From Octopus sinensis (Eukaryota), in contig NC_043002.1 of NCBI RefSeq assembly GCF_006345805.1, positions 72,044,001-72,108,000 of the forward strand: DNA of 64,000 nt. Direction: 5' to 3'. The notes under the pieces were generated by a model. The model was not told the DNA's origin and ran no database searches. It saw only the letters and a program-made list of their open reading frames with translations. Of the stretch, positions 38,937 to 59,508 are shown one piece after another. The position numbers were made by a program, and so were the translations under genes. Position 1 is the stretch's first letter; each line of letters begins with the position of its first letter.

Positions 38937-39373
38937 TATATATATATATATATATATATATATATATATATATATAAGAATGAATGTTTTTATATATAAT
39001 GAACGTGAAATACAGGAAGGGACGAACACGGAACACAGACAAATCATTCGAAGCCTTCAATCTTCAGTCAGACACCGAATCATCATAGCAAATTTCGGCT
39101 GTTCAATTCTGATATTTGCTCCAACTCGGCCAGCCCCAAGAAAAAAAACTAAGCTGTAAGCATTAGATTTCTTGGTAGAAGACAGGAATGTGAACGCACA
39201 AGACGGATGTGAATACAAGAGATGAAAACGAAATTGAAAACAGTAATGAATAAACAAAATATATATAACGGTGGTTGTCATACGACTTTAGACCAAATGA
39301 GACAAAAACAACAACAACAACATAGCTGGCGTAGAAATAATTACCGTTTCGGTAGCGGGGACACATGTTGGTC

Positions 39374-41090
39374 TATTTCTTTATTACCCACTAGGGGCCA
39401 CGAAGAGGGAACATTACAAAACATGGGGGGACATAAAACAATGCGATTAAAATTATGATTAAATGAATGTTAAAATGAAAACATGATAACATGAAAGCGA
39501 TGCTAACGGCCCCCTCCGCCAGCATCACTTACCTTTCCGTTTCCTATCACGATTCCAAAGTTTTTCACCTCACCTTTCATTTCTCTCTCATATCTCTCTA
39601 TCATATCATCCTTCATAAATGCTGATAAACAATTTATACGTAGTTCATTGCACTTGCTCATCAAAGAGCCCATGAGTTCAAAATCGAATACCGCATAGCT
39701 TCCGTCCTCATACTCCTGCCATACATCGTCTTCAAAAAGCCTTCTTGCGTTCTCAGTATCCCCCTTCCCCACAACACATAAAAAGTAGGACTGGGGCTTT
39801 TGTATGTTCTGTGTGTCTGTTTTCGTTTTTCTTGTAGGCGGGGAGTGGGTGGGATTGCTGTTTGCGGGGGCAGGATGGGTCTCCAAGGGTGTGGGTGGTA
39901 TTGGGGTGGGTTGGGGCTTCGCACAGTTTTTCCTTTTCTTTCCTTTTCTCTTCTTTCTGCCCTCCACACACTCTTTTTGCATCTCCTCCTCCTCTGTCAT
40001 TTCCCTTTCCGTCTGCTTCTCTTTAATTTCTTCTTCTTTTGGGGCCTCCTCTTTTGGAGTTTCCTCAACGATTTCCTTTTCTCTTGGTGGGGGAGGCAGA
40101 AGGCTCTTATGTGGCCCCTCAGGCCACACTTGTAACAACGTGGAGCTCTGCCCTCCACCCACACTCTCATAATCACGTCTCCCAATTTAATGCTCTCCGC
40201 CAGGTCCACCAGTACCTCGCTCTCCGCCTGCACGTTCAGCTCCACTATTACGCCTCTCCAGCCCTCGGTCTTGACCGAGGCATGGAGAATATCTACTTTC
40301 TCCTCGTGGCCGCTGATCACAGCCGCCACAATCCACTCAGCCTCCACGTTTGGTGGCACTCCCTCCACCCTTACTCGTGTGATCCTTCTATTCAAGTACA
40401 TAGGTAAAAGTGTTACCCTTTCTGACTTCACCGCCTTCACCGCCATCCTCCTCGCTGCAGTCTCACTTTTAAAATGCACCACTGCAGTACCGTACTTCGA
40501 TCCTCGAGTCAGGAAAATGATTTCCTCCTCCGATCTTCTCAGGGCCTCCTCTATCCATTCCATGTTTACGATCTCTATTTTCTTTCTTTCGTTCACGAAC
40601 ACCCTGTAAATTATGGTCCTCTTATTGTACCATTCCTTTCTCTTTGGTGGTGGTTCCAGTTCCACCTCGCCGCTGTCCTTCCTCATATACCTCTGGAAAC
40701 CTGGCAATTTTTCTAGGTTTATTTCTTTTTCCTGTTCCGTCTTCTTTTTTGCAACTCCTGCGTACGTTTTCCTGTTTTTTTTTCTCCACATTATTTACAT
40801 CACCGATTTGCTCGTCTTCAGAGTTCGATGTCTCCGACAAGCTCTCAAATATCCATTCTTCCTCCGACTCCTCCACTAGGGAGTGGTCATCCATCTCCTC
40901 CCGCCTGACAGGCCAAAACGGCCGTCAAAACAGAAATAGTGTAACGCGCAGAACCAGTGGAACGCGAAACCGCTTTAACGCCGTGCAAAATTTCCACAAC
41001 AACAACAATTTTTTTTGATCTTTTTTTACCGAATTTTACGAGCGTAAAAAAACACGACCGAACTCAAACTGACAAACAGACAACTGATCC
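39374..41090 (-). mobile_element. ORF1-only L1/Tx1-like non-LTR retroelement (element C)
   Basis: 19-bp TSD GCGGGGACACATGTTGGTC at 39355-39373 and 41091-41109. Contains a 5' UTR, one gag-like ORF, and a ~130-nt U-rich 3' UTR ending GCCCCTAGTGGGTAATAAGAAATA. No EN/RT sequence. Confidence 0.88.
39503..40894 (-). pseudogene. Retroelement ORF1p (gag-like, CCHC zinc knuckle) split by two frameshifts
   Basis: Overlapping ORFs 40622-40894, 39997-40791 (VWVEGRAPR-CYKCGLRGHIRAFC) and 39503-40162 (acidic and Pro-rich tail). Confidence 0.85.
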
Positions 41091-41539
41091 GCGGGGACAC
41101 ATGTTGGTCGAGATACGAAGGCCAACAGAATGGTTTAAGAAGCAGCAGGTCGCAGGAGAGAGAGAAAGAGAGACAGAGAGAGAGGGAATCAAAGAGGGTG
41201 GAAGGCAGGGGACAGAATCAGTGACCAAGAGAAAAGGAGAAAGAAGGGATTAAGGAGGATGGGAGGAAGAGGGGAGGAGGATGGGAGGAAGAGAGGGGAA
41301 GAATTATATATATATATATATATATATATATATATATAAACAAAATCAAATAGGGTAATAAAATAATTTATTATTACCAGTGGCCTAGCACAAAGGACGA
41401 ATTAGTCATTAGACTATATATTTTTCGTATAGAAATATAATAAAAGGCTTCCAAATAAGGTAGCGTAGTGCTAGAAACACAAAAAGGGATAAATTCATGA
41501 AAGGAATGAAAATTAAAAACATTTACCATCTCAGCTATA

Positions 41540-57489: not shown

Positions 57490-57502
57490 AAGTAGCTTGC
57501 TT

Positions 57503-59508
57503 ACGCATGCGTGTTTGTTAGTTGCTTATTGGATTGAAAACTGTCAAGACGTGAGTTGGTGGCCGTCTTGAATGGAAAAAACTGTTGAAGAGGCGCCACT
57601 GCAAGGTAGGCCCTTGTTTTTTGGGGTTTTTTTAAGGGACTCAATGGGGGATTTGTTGTATGACATTGTTTGTCCTTTTTTCATATAAGAAATCCTCATT
57701 GGGTCTCGAACATTTGTCTGCTGCAGTCGCGCTGAGTAACTCACTTAGCGGTGAGAATTGTTTTGTTTTGGTGGGCGTGTCTGGCTACCAAAATTTGAAA
57801 AGTTCATAAAAATTCGACCCATTCGTGGAGGAATTTTTTTGTCTGCTACGGTGAACTGGAGTACCTGTGTGAAGCAATATTTTTGAGGATTACCTGTGGA
57901 TTATTTACGGATTACCTTTCTTTGTTTCTTTGGACTTTATTTGAATATTTTGAACTTTTTTTAACCGTTTCCTGTGTTTTTTTCAAAGCATGGCAAAAAA
58001 TAAAAACACTGTCTTGGAGTGGGAAATTGTGCCCTCCCCCCACAAGCAGCGGGTAAAGGACTTTAATGAGAGAACGATGGTGCTGAGGACATATTCCAAG
58101 TCCCTCGACACCAACACTGTGTTCTCTCAAGTAGATATTGAAAAGGAGTTGGCAAAATATCTGCCAACCATCAAGTTTATTGCAAGGAGTGTCAAATATG
58201 CAACAGGGTGGTTGCTATTTGATACCCCTAAGGAGGCTCGCATTTTTGCGAGCCAGCCCCTGGAAGGAGAGAAATTTCTGTTTCTGCCTACATATCGTGG
58301 AAGGAAATTGACAAGAGCTTGGGTGTGTGGGCTGCCACCCGCAATAGAGTCTGAGTAGATAGAGGACACTATCCGCCGTGGTCTGGGTGGCAGCGGAGAC
58401 AAGCTCTTAAATGTTAAAATGATGCCTGCGGCTGATTAGGTGGGGTCAAAGGCAGTTTTGACTCTGTGGACCCAATCAGCCGATGATCTGGTGTTCCCAT
58501 ATTTTTTGAGGATGGCTGGGTCCAGGTATCCGGTGATTCTTGAGGGACTCCCCCCCCCCAGTGTCATCAGTGCCTGGAGCCTGGCCACATTAAGAAGAAC
58601 TGTCCCAAGGACCAGAGCAGGGTAGTGCAGAAGTTAGTTGAGGAAGAACCCCCTCCCCCTTCTCCTCTGGAAGGAGAGATGGAAGAGGAGGGAGTGAACT
58701 CCTCCGAAAAAAAGGGGAGAAAAGGGAAGAAGTGGAGCAACAATGGTTGCACTCCGAGGGATCCAAAAGGTTGCGGGAGGAAGCGAGGCTCCCGCGGATA
58801 TGGCGAAGGAGCCAACCCCTCCCGCACCAAAGATAAAAGAGAAAAAGAAAAAATGAATGGGACAGTGCCGGAGGTGTGCAGTGTACTGCCGGCATGTCCC
58901 GAGGCCTCTTCGGTGGGAATCGTGCCACCGACAGAGGAAGCTGTGGCCCTTTCCAGTGAAAGTAAAGAATATGTGGCATTCTATCTTAGGGGAGGGGTTG
59001 TTGACAACTTTGTTGAGAGTTGTCTTGATAGTCAGAACCTGATGGACTCGGCCTGTACTGATTACCAGCATTGGCTGTCGCATGTGGCGGCGCTGGTGGT
59101 GAAAGAGAGTTCTTTCGAATAGTGGAGTCCTGGTCGAAGGAAGATTACAATTATATCTTTTGGTGCCCGACTTGCGGCTGATGGATTGTCTGCGGGCGAC
59201 AAGAGAATTGATAGGTGATGGTTGAAGAGACTTTGTGTCTCAGTCTGTGTAAGAGGTTTATTGCCTCATTTTTGTGTATTCTATTTTGTAGAAAGACAAA
59301 AAGAAAATTTGGAATAAACCAAAGTAAAAGTTTTAATACCTCATTTTGTTTTGTTTTGTAAAAAATAATGCATTAGAGAAGCAAATAATCGGCGGGCATT
59401 TTTTGTCTTCTCCCATCAATACCATTTTTCATCATTCATCTCATTAAAGTTTCTGTCCAGCCAGCAAGCTACTCTTTGTAATGCCATTATGGCAAATTTT
59501 ATGAAATA
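57503..59508 (+). mobile_element. ORF1-only L1/Tx1-like retroelement (element B)
   Basis: Flanked by AAGTAGCTTGCTT at 57490-57502 and 59509-59521. The 3' end is GTAATGCCATTATGGCAAATTTTATGAAATA. No EN/RT motifs. Confidence 0.88.
57990..59122 (+). pseudogene. ORF1p relic of element B with CCHC knuckle (2 stops, 1 frameshift)
   Basis: FLFLPTYRGRKLTRAWVCGLPP...VILEGLPP / CHQCLEPGHIKKNC (CX2CX4HX4C) across the poly-C at about 58550-58559. Confidence 0.85.

Follow-up and report, generated by a model that had tools for sequence, protein, structure and literature searches.

ORF1-only, probably non-autonomous LINEs related to octopod L1-type elements in the genome of Octopus sinensis

We analysed a stretch of 64,000 nucleotides from Octopus sinensis (assembly GCF_006345805.1, contig NC_043002.1, positions 72,044,001–72,108,000 of the forward strand), which is referred to here as the window and to which coordinates refer unless a locus is named. 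The window is AT-rich, rich in microsatellites and short interspersed nuclear elements (SINEs), and eukaryotic in character. It contains three insertions, designated A, B, and C, each of which carries the first open reading frame (ORF1) of a long interspersed nuclear element (LINE) and lacks the second (ORF2), which encodes endonuclease and reverse transcriptase (RT). Our analysis indicated that A, B, and C are probably dead copies of ORF1-only, non-autonomous LINEs that derive from octopod L1-type LINEs, probably of the L1-Tx1 group. The insertions, their target-site duplications, and the SINE that two of them interrupt are as follows.

39374–41090, minus strand: element C, 1717 bp, a complete ORF1-only unit, colinear from ORF1 to tail with the independent element L003
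41091–41109: target-site duplication on the side of the 5' end of C, an exact 19-bp repeat, GACCAACATGTGTCCCCGC in the minus-strand reading
39355–39373: target-site duplication on the side of the 3' end of C, exact 19 bp, GACCAACATGTGTCCCCGC
56053–56086, plus strand: head of the interrupted SINE, SINE positions about 2–34, ending at 56086
56072–56086: upstream copy of the duplication of A, exact 15 bp, GTAGCTTGCTTACGC
56087–57491, plus strand: element A, 1405 bp, ORF1-only and strongly decayed, with ORF1 remnants at 56190–57215 and the zinc knuckle deleted
57492–57506: downstream copy of the duplication of A, GTAGCTTGCTTACGC, the first 11 nt of which double as the upstream duplication copy of B
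57492–57502: upstream copy of the duplication of B, exact 11 bp, GTAGCTTGCTT
57503–59510, plus strand: element B, approximately 2008 bp, ORF1-only, with ORF1 at 57990–59122
59511–59521: downstream copy of the duplication of B, exact 11 bp, GTAGCTTGCTT
59511–59796, plus strand: remainder of the interrupted SINE, SINE positions 19–311, 82% identity

A first-pass annotation had described the three elements as units bounded by target-site duplications (19 bp for C), each with a 5' untranslated region (UTR), ORF1, and a U-rich 3'UTR. Both the boundaries and the layout were borne out, with exact duplications of 19, 15, and 11 bp for C, A, and B, respectively. When compared by BLAST with an intact SINE copy at 37240–37560, the sequence at 56055–56085 corresponded to SINE positions 4–34 with 90% identity, and that at 59509–59796 to SINE positions 19–311. 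The flanks of A and B thus rejoin as one SINE, indicating that the empty site was a continuous SINE with an 11-bp duplication. A and B lie head to tail on the plus strand within this single SINE copy; GTAGCTTGCTT is present at all three of their junctions (56072, 57492, and 59511), and the last 4 nt of the downstream duplication of A are the first bases of B. The empty site of C showed no match to any repeat in hand. The SINE itself had no match in Rfam or by ARAGORN, and its tRNA-like origin is unconfirmed. No further copies of A, B, or C were found within the window.

Each of the three elements contains one ORF1-like frame and no other coding content. The coding features of C and the zinc knuckle of B are located as follows.

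40895–41090, minus strand: 5'UTR of C, running from the duplication to the first ATG in the ORF segment with the acidic N-terminus
39503–40894, minus strand: ORF1 of C, ancestral length approximately 464 codons, now in three frame segments
40622–40894, minus strand: segment with the acidic N-terminus
39997–40791, minus strand: segment with two RNA recognition motif (RRM) folds and the knuckle, an open core of 264 codons
39503–40162, minus strand: segment with the linker and the C-terminal domain
40096–40137, minus strand: CCHC zinc knuckle of C, CYKCGLRGHIRAFC, of the form CX2CX4HX4C, with a weak Pfam zf-CCHC match
58562–58603, plus strand: CCHC zinc knuckle of B, CHQCLEPGHIKKNC, of the form CX2CX4HX4C

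From comparison with a relative, the frame segments of C were read as the result of two frameshifts of 1 nt each, one in an A9 run (40775–40783) and the other just past the knuckle near 40100, and the ancestral ORF1 was therefore estimated at approximately 464 codons. The ORF1 of B has two stops and one frameshift, and that of A has several stops and frameshifts and has lost the knuckle. In amino acid sequence, the ORF1 of C showed 38 and 30% identity with those of A and B, respectively. Sequence searches with ORF1 gave little: Pfam returned a sub-threshold zf-CCHC alone, the PDB sequence search returned retroviral knuckles alone (E>0.1), and a word-indexed protein search gave zero matches for the ORF of C and 1 and 3 proteins for two profile queries. 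A full HMMER scan of a 1.84-billion-protein library with a profile of the three ORF1 cores matched 511 proteins, of which 144 were below 1e-10. Sources were looked up for 20 of the profile matches; all of the 13 that were named were octopods (Octopus vulgaris, O. sinensis, O. bimaculoides, and Argonauta hians), and the other 7 came from Logan or ENA samples. The AlphaFold (AF2) model of the core of C, with an alignment built from 53 profile matches, reached a predicted local distance difference test score (pLDDT) of 94.6 and consisted of two beta-alpha-beta-beta-alpha-beta units followed by the knuckle. The top Foldseek matches to this model were tandem-RRM proteins, namely IMP3 RRM12, raver1, hnRNP A1 UP1, and SFPQ/NONO. 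The combination of RRM and CCHC modules suspected in the first-pass annotation was thereby found in the predicted fold, and its gag-like ORF1 with CX2CX4HX4C in B and C was located at 58562–58603 and 40096–40137. A C-terminal domain motif, Y..LK..F..DVG, was common to C, to the ORF1-only unit L006b, and to the ORF1 of full-length elements. In a tblastn search with the ORF1 of one such full-length element, L002, C was matched at E 4e-44 (35% over 229 aa), A at 4e-22 (33%), and B at 5e-07. The ORF1 of A, B, and C is a genuine LINE ORF1 with two RRM folds, a CCHC knuckle, and a C-terminal domain.

Full-length relatives that carry ORF2 were identified in octopods. L002, the O. vulgaris locus of protein P0001 (OX597840.1), contains a 5.28-kb element whose 503-aa ORF1 is overlapped by a 1132-aa ORF2 with Exo_endo_phos, RVT_1, and zf-RVT domains, and the best PDB match of this ORF2 was human L1 ORF2p (E 2e-71). 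The locus is a tandem array (440–13026) of at least 3 full-length 5.28-kb copies, 98–99% alike, with a 9-bp spacer, CAC(T/C)(G/C)GATA(A), similar to the sequence upstream of the first array unit; this pattern fits repeated cutting of a site regenerated by duplication. ORF1 is also followed by ORF2 in L004 of O. sinensis, which is inserted in an (ATT)n microsatellite, and in L019 of Argonauta hians, which has a 16-bp duplication, and the beginning of ORF2 is visible in the Logan contig L005. At the clade level, the APE/RVT_1/zf-RVT domains and the match with human L1 ORF2p indicate derivation from an L1-clade LINE. The parents of A, B, and C are most likely of the L1-Tx1 type, an assignment based on the published RepeatMasker-type classification (PMC13282606, PMC8967140). 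For O. vulgaris, published annotation lists 13 L1-Tx1 families that were recently active, with 421 insertions that span 2.29 Mb (PMC13282606), and the insertion size implied by these numbers fits the full-length octopod elements.

Even at E≤10, the ORF2 of L002 gave no tblastn match within A, B, or C, and that of L019 gave none at E≤1; neither query detected ORF2 similarity in other ORF1-only loci. The lack of any endonuclease or RT remnant, as had been claimed, was thus upheld with cognate ORF2 queries, and the interval of about 130 nt given for C from the ORF1 stop to the tail proved to be 129 nt from the stop to the element end. The features at the junction of ORF1 and the 3'UTR are as follows.

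39523–39534, minus strand: ORF1-end/ORF2-start motif in C, AGGTAAGTGATG, including the ORF2 ATG
59211–59221, plus strand: degenerate ORF2-start motif in B, ATAGGTGATGG
39374–39502, minus strand: 3'UTR of C, 129 nt, 43% T, ending with the hairpin GCCC-CTAGT-GGGT and AATAAAGAAATA

In the autonomous elements L002 and L005, the ORF2 start codon is part of the sequence AAGGTAAGT(G/C)ATG, which lies close to the ORF1 end. This motif persists in the ORF1-only elements C and L003, and as the variant GGTAAGTAATGG in a further ORF1-only element, L018 (positions 2052 in L002, 1850 in L005, 6899 in L003, approximately 8166 in L018, and 39523–39534 on the minus strand of the window); past the ATG, the 3'UTR begins directly. 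Because C, L003, and L018 keep the motif with the 3'UTR straight after the ATG, the 3.4-kb ORF2 coding sequence for endonuclease, RT, and zinc finger has been removed almost exactly, leaving the motif AAGGTAAGTGATG. The absent middle of the first-pass annotation therefore held for the ORF2 coding sequence but not for the ORF2-start motif, which persists with its ATG in C. AAGGTAAGTGATG is conserved at the nucleotide level across lineages whose ORF1 proteins are only approximately 30% identical, and it holds the ORF2 ATG, a perfect match to the 5' splice-site consensus, and stop codons in both remaining frames; its role is perhaps the control of ORF2 translation. In C, the retained ORF2 ATG opens a hydrophobic ORF of 45 codons across the whole 3'UTR (39374–39526, minus strand), with its stop 15 nt before the element end, and the equivalent frame of L003 (6908–7055) is open for at least 47 codons, read to approximately 25 nt short of the element end. 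These long frames may be a mere effect of U-richness.

L003, the O. sinensis locus of protein P0002, was colinear with C through ORF1, the linker, the ORF2-start motif, the 3'UTR, and the tail with 66–70% nucleotide identity, and it had no ORF2. It has its own 17–18 bp duplication, CAGAAA(C/T)GTTAGCACGCC, and lies inside a different SINE; its uninterrupted target sequence occurs twice in the window. Since C and L003 are long diverged and occupy distinct insertion sites but have the same ORF2-less junction, the ORF1-only state was probably inherited by a lineage rather than produced by three local accidents. For this one pair, the comparison indicates that the junction was passed on within a lineage, as judged from the two sequences. 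Over 223 aligned codons of the ORF1 cores of C and L003, the proportion of synonymous differences (pS) was 0.78, which is saturated, and that of nonsynonymous differences (pN) was 0.27, giving a pN/pS of 0.35 (bootstrap 0.29–0.43) between these two ORF2-less elements versus 1.13 in an off-frame control. The ORF1 of B and that of its O. sinensis relative L001 gave a pN/pS of 0.25. These ratios show purifying selection on ORF1.

In a matrix of ORF1 identities, A, C, and L003 formed one group with 40–52% identity that was ORF2-less throughout, and the loss of ORF2 is therefore older than these insertions. The first-pass claim that the middle had been lost three times independently was not supported, since A and C fall with L003 in this single group. 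Additional ORF1-only units were found at two other loci. L006, a Logan contig (SRR11869394, 1–5026), contains three mutually divergent ORF1 elements head to tail (approximately 375–1915, 1916–3455, and 3456 to the contig end), two of which, L006a and L006b, are complete ORF1-only units. No recognisable common duplication was present between the units at the L006 junctions, and their stacking may have come about through RT template jumping or through insertions made repeatedly at the ends of elements. L018 (O. vulgaris OX597815.1, 6700–8790) is an ORF1-only element; it is flanked by a direct repeat of approximately 75 bp (cttagggctaaata...catacaactactttat) rather than a short duplication and is without the usual terminal hairpin and tail. 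The 3' part of L001 is lost, so its ORF2 status was not readable, and L012–L017 were found to be a single degenerate locus recovered from six sequencing runs. The classifiable loci thus comprised seven ORF1-only units (A, B, C, L003, L006a, L006b, and L018) and four autonomous lineages (L002, L004, L005, and L019).

The chief rival explanation, which we consider unlikely, is that ORF2-less complementary DNAs were made repeatedly from full-length L1-Tx1 RNAs by RT template switching or short-repeat deletion and were dead on arrival, without founding a lineage. In L002, ORF2 is flanked by AGTGATG at its start and AGTGGTG 27 nt past its stop, and the junction of C reads ...GGTAAGTGATG|CTGGCGGAGGGGG..., as a crossover in microhomology of the L002 type would give; the ORF2-less junction could plausibly have arisen by template switching or by a deletion through microhomology, as modelled on L002, which is not the direct parent. 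The occurrence of the ORF2-less state in several very divergent ORF1 lineages also accords with recurrent by-products. However, the junction of C recurs in L003 together with a shortened 3'UTR, the two differ by 30–34% with a pN/pS of 0.35, and by-products would require two unseen autonomous masters with the identical deletion. Furthermore, the sampled A-C-L003 group is wholly ORF2-less, and ORF1-only units number seven against four autonomous lineages.

Several observations weigh against the interpretation of A, B, and C as members of ORF1-only lineages. Outside the A-C-L003 group, the ORF1 matrix was star-like, with B and L006a–c each approximately 20–30% identical to everything else, and because it did not resolve clean clades of ORF1-only and autonomous elements, a repeated origin is possible. 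A second ORF2-less relative in which both ends can be seen was found for C alone. In nucleotide sequence, the 5'UTRs of A, B, and C showed no similarity to those of L002 and L004; B and L001 have a common 5' end. A, B, and C are all broken, and none is itself active; the use of ORF1p in cis and mobilisation in trans are steps that we infer.

Splicing of LINE transcripts, in which an intron spanning ORF2 would be removed before reverse transcription, was considered very unlikely. At the ORF1 end of the autonomous L002 and L005, the sequence AAG|GTAAGT fits the 5' splice-site consensus perfectly. Spliced integrated retrotransposed L1 elements (SpIREs) of human are likewise LINE copies with both ends kept and an internal gap, and their junctions are exon–exon joins. 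However, use of the donor would remove GTAAGYGATG, which C and L003 keep together with the ORF2 ATG and which L018 keeps as GGTAAGTAATGG. The retained GTAAG, by which the octopus elements differ from SpIREs, rules out splicing at this donor-like site as the source of the junction, and no GT...AG pair matched the junction mapped on L002. Retrocopies of a host gene for a domesticated ORF1-like RNA-binding protein, rather than transposons, are hardly credible. Several homologues are annotated as 'uncharacterized protein' in Octopus, but the annotated 'genes' examined (L001, L003, and L004) were copies of transposable elements, and the same protein is the ORF1 of ORF2-bearing elements. In addition, the 3' end is a LINE hairpin and tail with no poly(A) tail, and the copies are decayed and inserted in SINEs. 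One-off internal deletions, by which three full-length insertions each lost ORF2 locally after integration, were the least probable explanation and in practice refuted: full-length relatives with ORF2 do exist, but the junction of C recurs at the unrelated locus L003, L006 and L018 are built alike, and each of three events would have had to take out precisely ORF2 and leave ORF1, the ORF2-start motif, and the 3'UTR in place. Splicing, host-gene retrocopies, and one-off deletions were accordingly rejected, on the retained motif, on the LINE tail and ORF2-bearing homologues, and on the junction shared by C and L003, respectively.

The 3' ends connect the ORF1-only elements with the autonomous ones. 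The last 40 nt of C showed 87.5% identity with the 3' end of the autonomous L002. The tails consist of a short hairpin followed by (N)AATAAA(GAAATA), not poly(A), and the elements end with ...GAAATAAA or ...AATAAAGAAATA, without an A-run. When the tails of autonomous and ORF1-only elements (A, B, C, L002, L003, L004, L006a–c, and L019) were aligned, their common form was ...GTCCC.TCT.TG...stem-YTTRT-stem-(N)AATAAA(GAAAT). Pairing in the 4-bp stem was present in 86% of cells compared with 67% in shuffles (0/500 as high), the covariation score was 0.545 versus 0.211, and controls slid along the alignment paired at ≤45%; one stem pair was CG in 4 sequences and GC in 4. As the stem is small and was picked by eye, this covariation is supportive only. 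The same terminal module (...TTGTCCCTTCTATGTTTAGCCCCTTGTGGGCAATAATGAAATAAGAAATA) was also observed in a short, 5'-truncated LINE 3' end in the window (approximately 31711–31985, plus strand) and in L003 at 2092–2164. The ORF end before the module at approximately 31711–31985 (...ELKQLSISWDDAGDYIQNWRCF...) was unlike the ORF2 C-termini of L002, L004, and L019, and the module may be common to another LINE lineage too.

As far as these analyses reach, the first-pass reading of the elements as ORF1-only, non-autonomous families was supported by the predicted fold, the junction common to C and L003, the pN/pS ratios, and the existence of full-length relatives with ORF2. In the interpretation that we favour, each copy is a full-length retrotransposed unit consisting, in order, of a 5'UTR, a complete ORF1, the ORF1-end/ORF2-start motif, and then directly a 3'UTR with the 4-bp hairpin and AAUAAA(GAAAU). 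The complete ORF1 encodes an acidic N-terminus followed by two RRM folds, a single CCHC knuckle, a linker rich in K, E, and P, and the C-terminal Y..LK..F..DVG domain. The element's own 5'UTR would drive transcription of the RNA, and ORF1p would coat its own RNA in cis. ORF2p of autonomous relatives, for which the full-length L002, L004, and L019 with the same 3' tail and ORF2 are candidate donors, would recognise the shared 3' hairpin and tail and copy the RNA into the nicked target by target-primed reverse transcription, leaving duplications of 11–19 bp. For the lineages of A and B, this nick would fall at one nucleotide of the abundant SINE, GGTAA|GTAGC, and the duplication would restore this site, permitting re-cutting and hence head-to-tail stacking.

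A and B have one common bottom-strand nick in the SINE, GGTAA|GTAGC (GGTAA|GTAGCTTGCTT). L001, which showed 73% identity over positions 3–1411 of B, likewise follows this SINE head, broken off at the identical position (5463–5500 of the L001 locus) in other flanking DNA; the 5' junction alone is visible at this locus. Because the 15-bp duplication of A includes the first 4 nt of B, A is later than B, and the simplest reading is that B inserted first and A then inserted at the same bottom-strand nick, with the second nick 15 nt downstream inside B. Three events (A, B, and L001) at one position of a SINE that makes up approximately 5% of the window are very unlikely to be due to chance. The shared nick site suggests a site-specific endonuclease, which would account for the head-to-tail stacking. 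C, whose site matched no repeat, and L003, in a different SINE, are inserted elsewhere than the A/B site.

A, B, and C are a cephalopod case of the 'half-LINE' kind, that is, of a parasite of a parasite. Among the 'bipartite nonautonomous LINEs' of Kojima 2018, the ORF1-present type includes HeT-A of the Jockey clade, HAL1 of the L1 clade, as well as Ag-Sponge of the CR1 clade (PMC5786205). A, B, and C fit this already known category: their ORF1p is homologous to that of an autonomous LINE, endonuclease and RT are absent, and the 3' end is common with an autonomous LINE. HAL1 ('half-L1') is a mammalian element (Bao & Jurka 2010, cited through PMC5786205 and PMC4161310). HAL1 and the octopus elements are alike as non-autonomous L1-clade derivatives that keep the 3' end and the ORF1-containing 5' part, have no ORF2, and are presumed to be moved by L1 ORF2p. 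HAL1 ORF1p is of the mammalian type, with a coiled coil, one RRM, and a C-terminal domain, and the HAL1 tail is poly(A), whereas the octopus ORF1p has two RRMs, a CCHC knuckle, and another C-terminal domain, and the tail is a hairpin with AATAAA. The parent of the octopus elements is an L1-type LINE of octopods, site preference is seen in the lineages of A and B, and the origins are unrelated. Thus, the HAL1-like class proposed in the first pass is apt as a kind of ORF1-only LINE derivative, but HAL1 by descent is contradicted by the ORF1 architecture and the tail. HeT-A of Drosophila telomeres and Ag-Sponge of Anopheles are similarly bipartite LINEs that still encode ORF1p (PMC5786205), and HeT-A also resembles the octopus elements in its head-to-tail arrays and CCHC-containing Gag. 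However, both belong to other LINE clades, the octopus elements have no suggested host function, and HeT-A arrays grow at chromosome ends, whereas the octopus stacks would grow by re-cutting of an internal target.

Members of the Tx1 group (Tx1L, Keno, Mutsu, Kibi, and Koshi) are L1-clade elements of the APE type that insert in specific repeats such as transposons, small RNA genes, and microsatellites. The insertion of L004 in (ATT)n, the tandem array of L002, the single SINE nick of A and B, and the same SINE position at L001 may reflect a similar behaviour, C and L003 being inserted at other sites; however, Tx1 members are autonomous, whereas A, B, and C are without ORF2, and the placement of the octopus elements is taken from published classification. 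Some SINEs and other non-autonomous elements carry the same stem-loop in the 3' tail as a 'stringent' partner LINE, for example UnaSINE1 and UnaL2. A conserved short 3' hairpin common to parasite and partner, likely an RT handle, is the point of likeness with the octopus elements, but SINEs are short, transcribed by RNA polymerase III, and non-coding, whereas the octopus elements are 1.4–2.0 kb and protein-coding. A literature search, which did not include Repbase/Dfam, found no description of ORF1-only LINEs in cephalopods.

A broader interpretation, possible but doubtful at present, is that the ORF1-only elements are protein-coding hyperparasites of L1-Tx1 elements that form an old and diversified clade, persist across octopod lineages with purifying selection on ORF1, rival or outnumber their autonomous partners, in some cases home to one nucleotide of the most abundant octopus SINE, and stack into heterologous head-to-tail arrays (A-B and L006). 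If target choice or the capture of ORF2p is aided by the elements' own ORF1p or RNA, they would provide a natural system separating the cis and trans needs of LINE retrotransposition. Under the interpretation that we favour, the ORF1-only elements add to HAL1, HeT-A, and Ag-Sponge a fourth case, independent of these, of a LINE parasite retaining ORF1, which touches on an old question, namely why ORF1p is required in cis. The near-exact ORF2 excision, the kept ORF2-start motif, and the common covarying 3' hairpin offer experimental handles. Repeats make up about two-thirds of octopus genomes, and the LINE groups that remain active there include L1-Tx1 (PMC13282606). As judged from the ratio of seven to four among the sampled loci, much ORF1-bearing 'L1-Tx1' sequence may consist of ORF2-less units. 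This would affect repeat annotation, counts of 'active LINEs', and gene models; several of the ORF1s appear in databases as ordinary proteins of Octopus, and in one case, P0022, the ORF1 is joined to a zinc-finger gene model.

The relatives of the ORF1 of A were proteins P0021, P0008 (the closest, with no contig on record), and P0022. The last (O. bimaculoides A0A0L8GU38) is a deposited gene model in which the N-terminus and RRMs of an A-family ORF1 are joined to a C2H2 zinc-finger array, and it is either an annotation chimera or an exonised transposable element. In four Logan runs (L008–L011), an A-like ORF1 is followed by approximately 1 kb of GC-rich sequence (approximately 1650–2700), in which neither ORF2 similarity nor an Rfam match was found, and then by a TCAT-rich 3' region. 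Elsewhere in the window, an ORF at 17809–18327 on the plus strand resembled the C-terminus of a mariner-like transposase, and an ORF at 33419–33904 on the minus strand resembled a hAT/ZBED-like protein, both by eye from the translations; the two look like DNA-transposon remnants.

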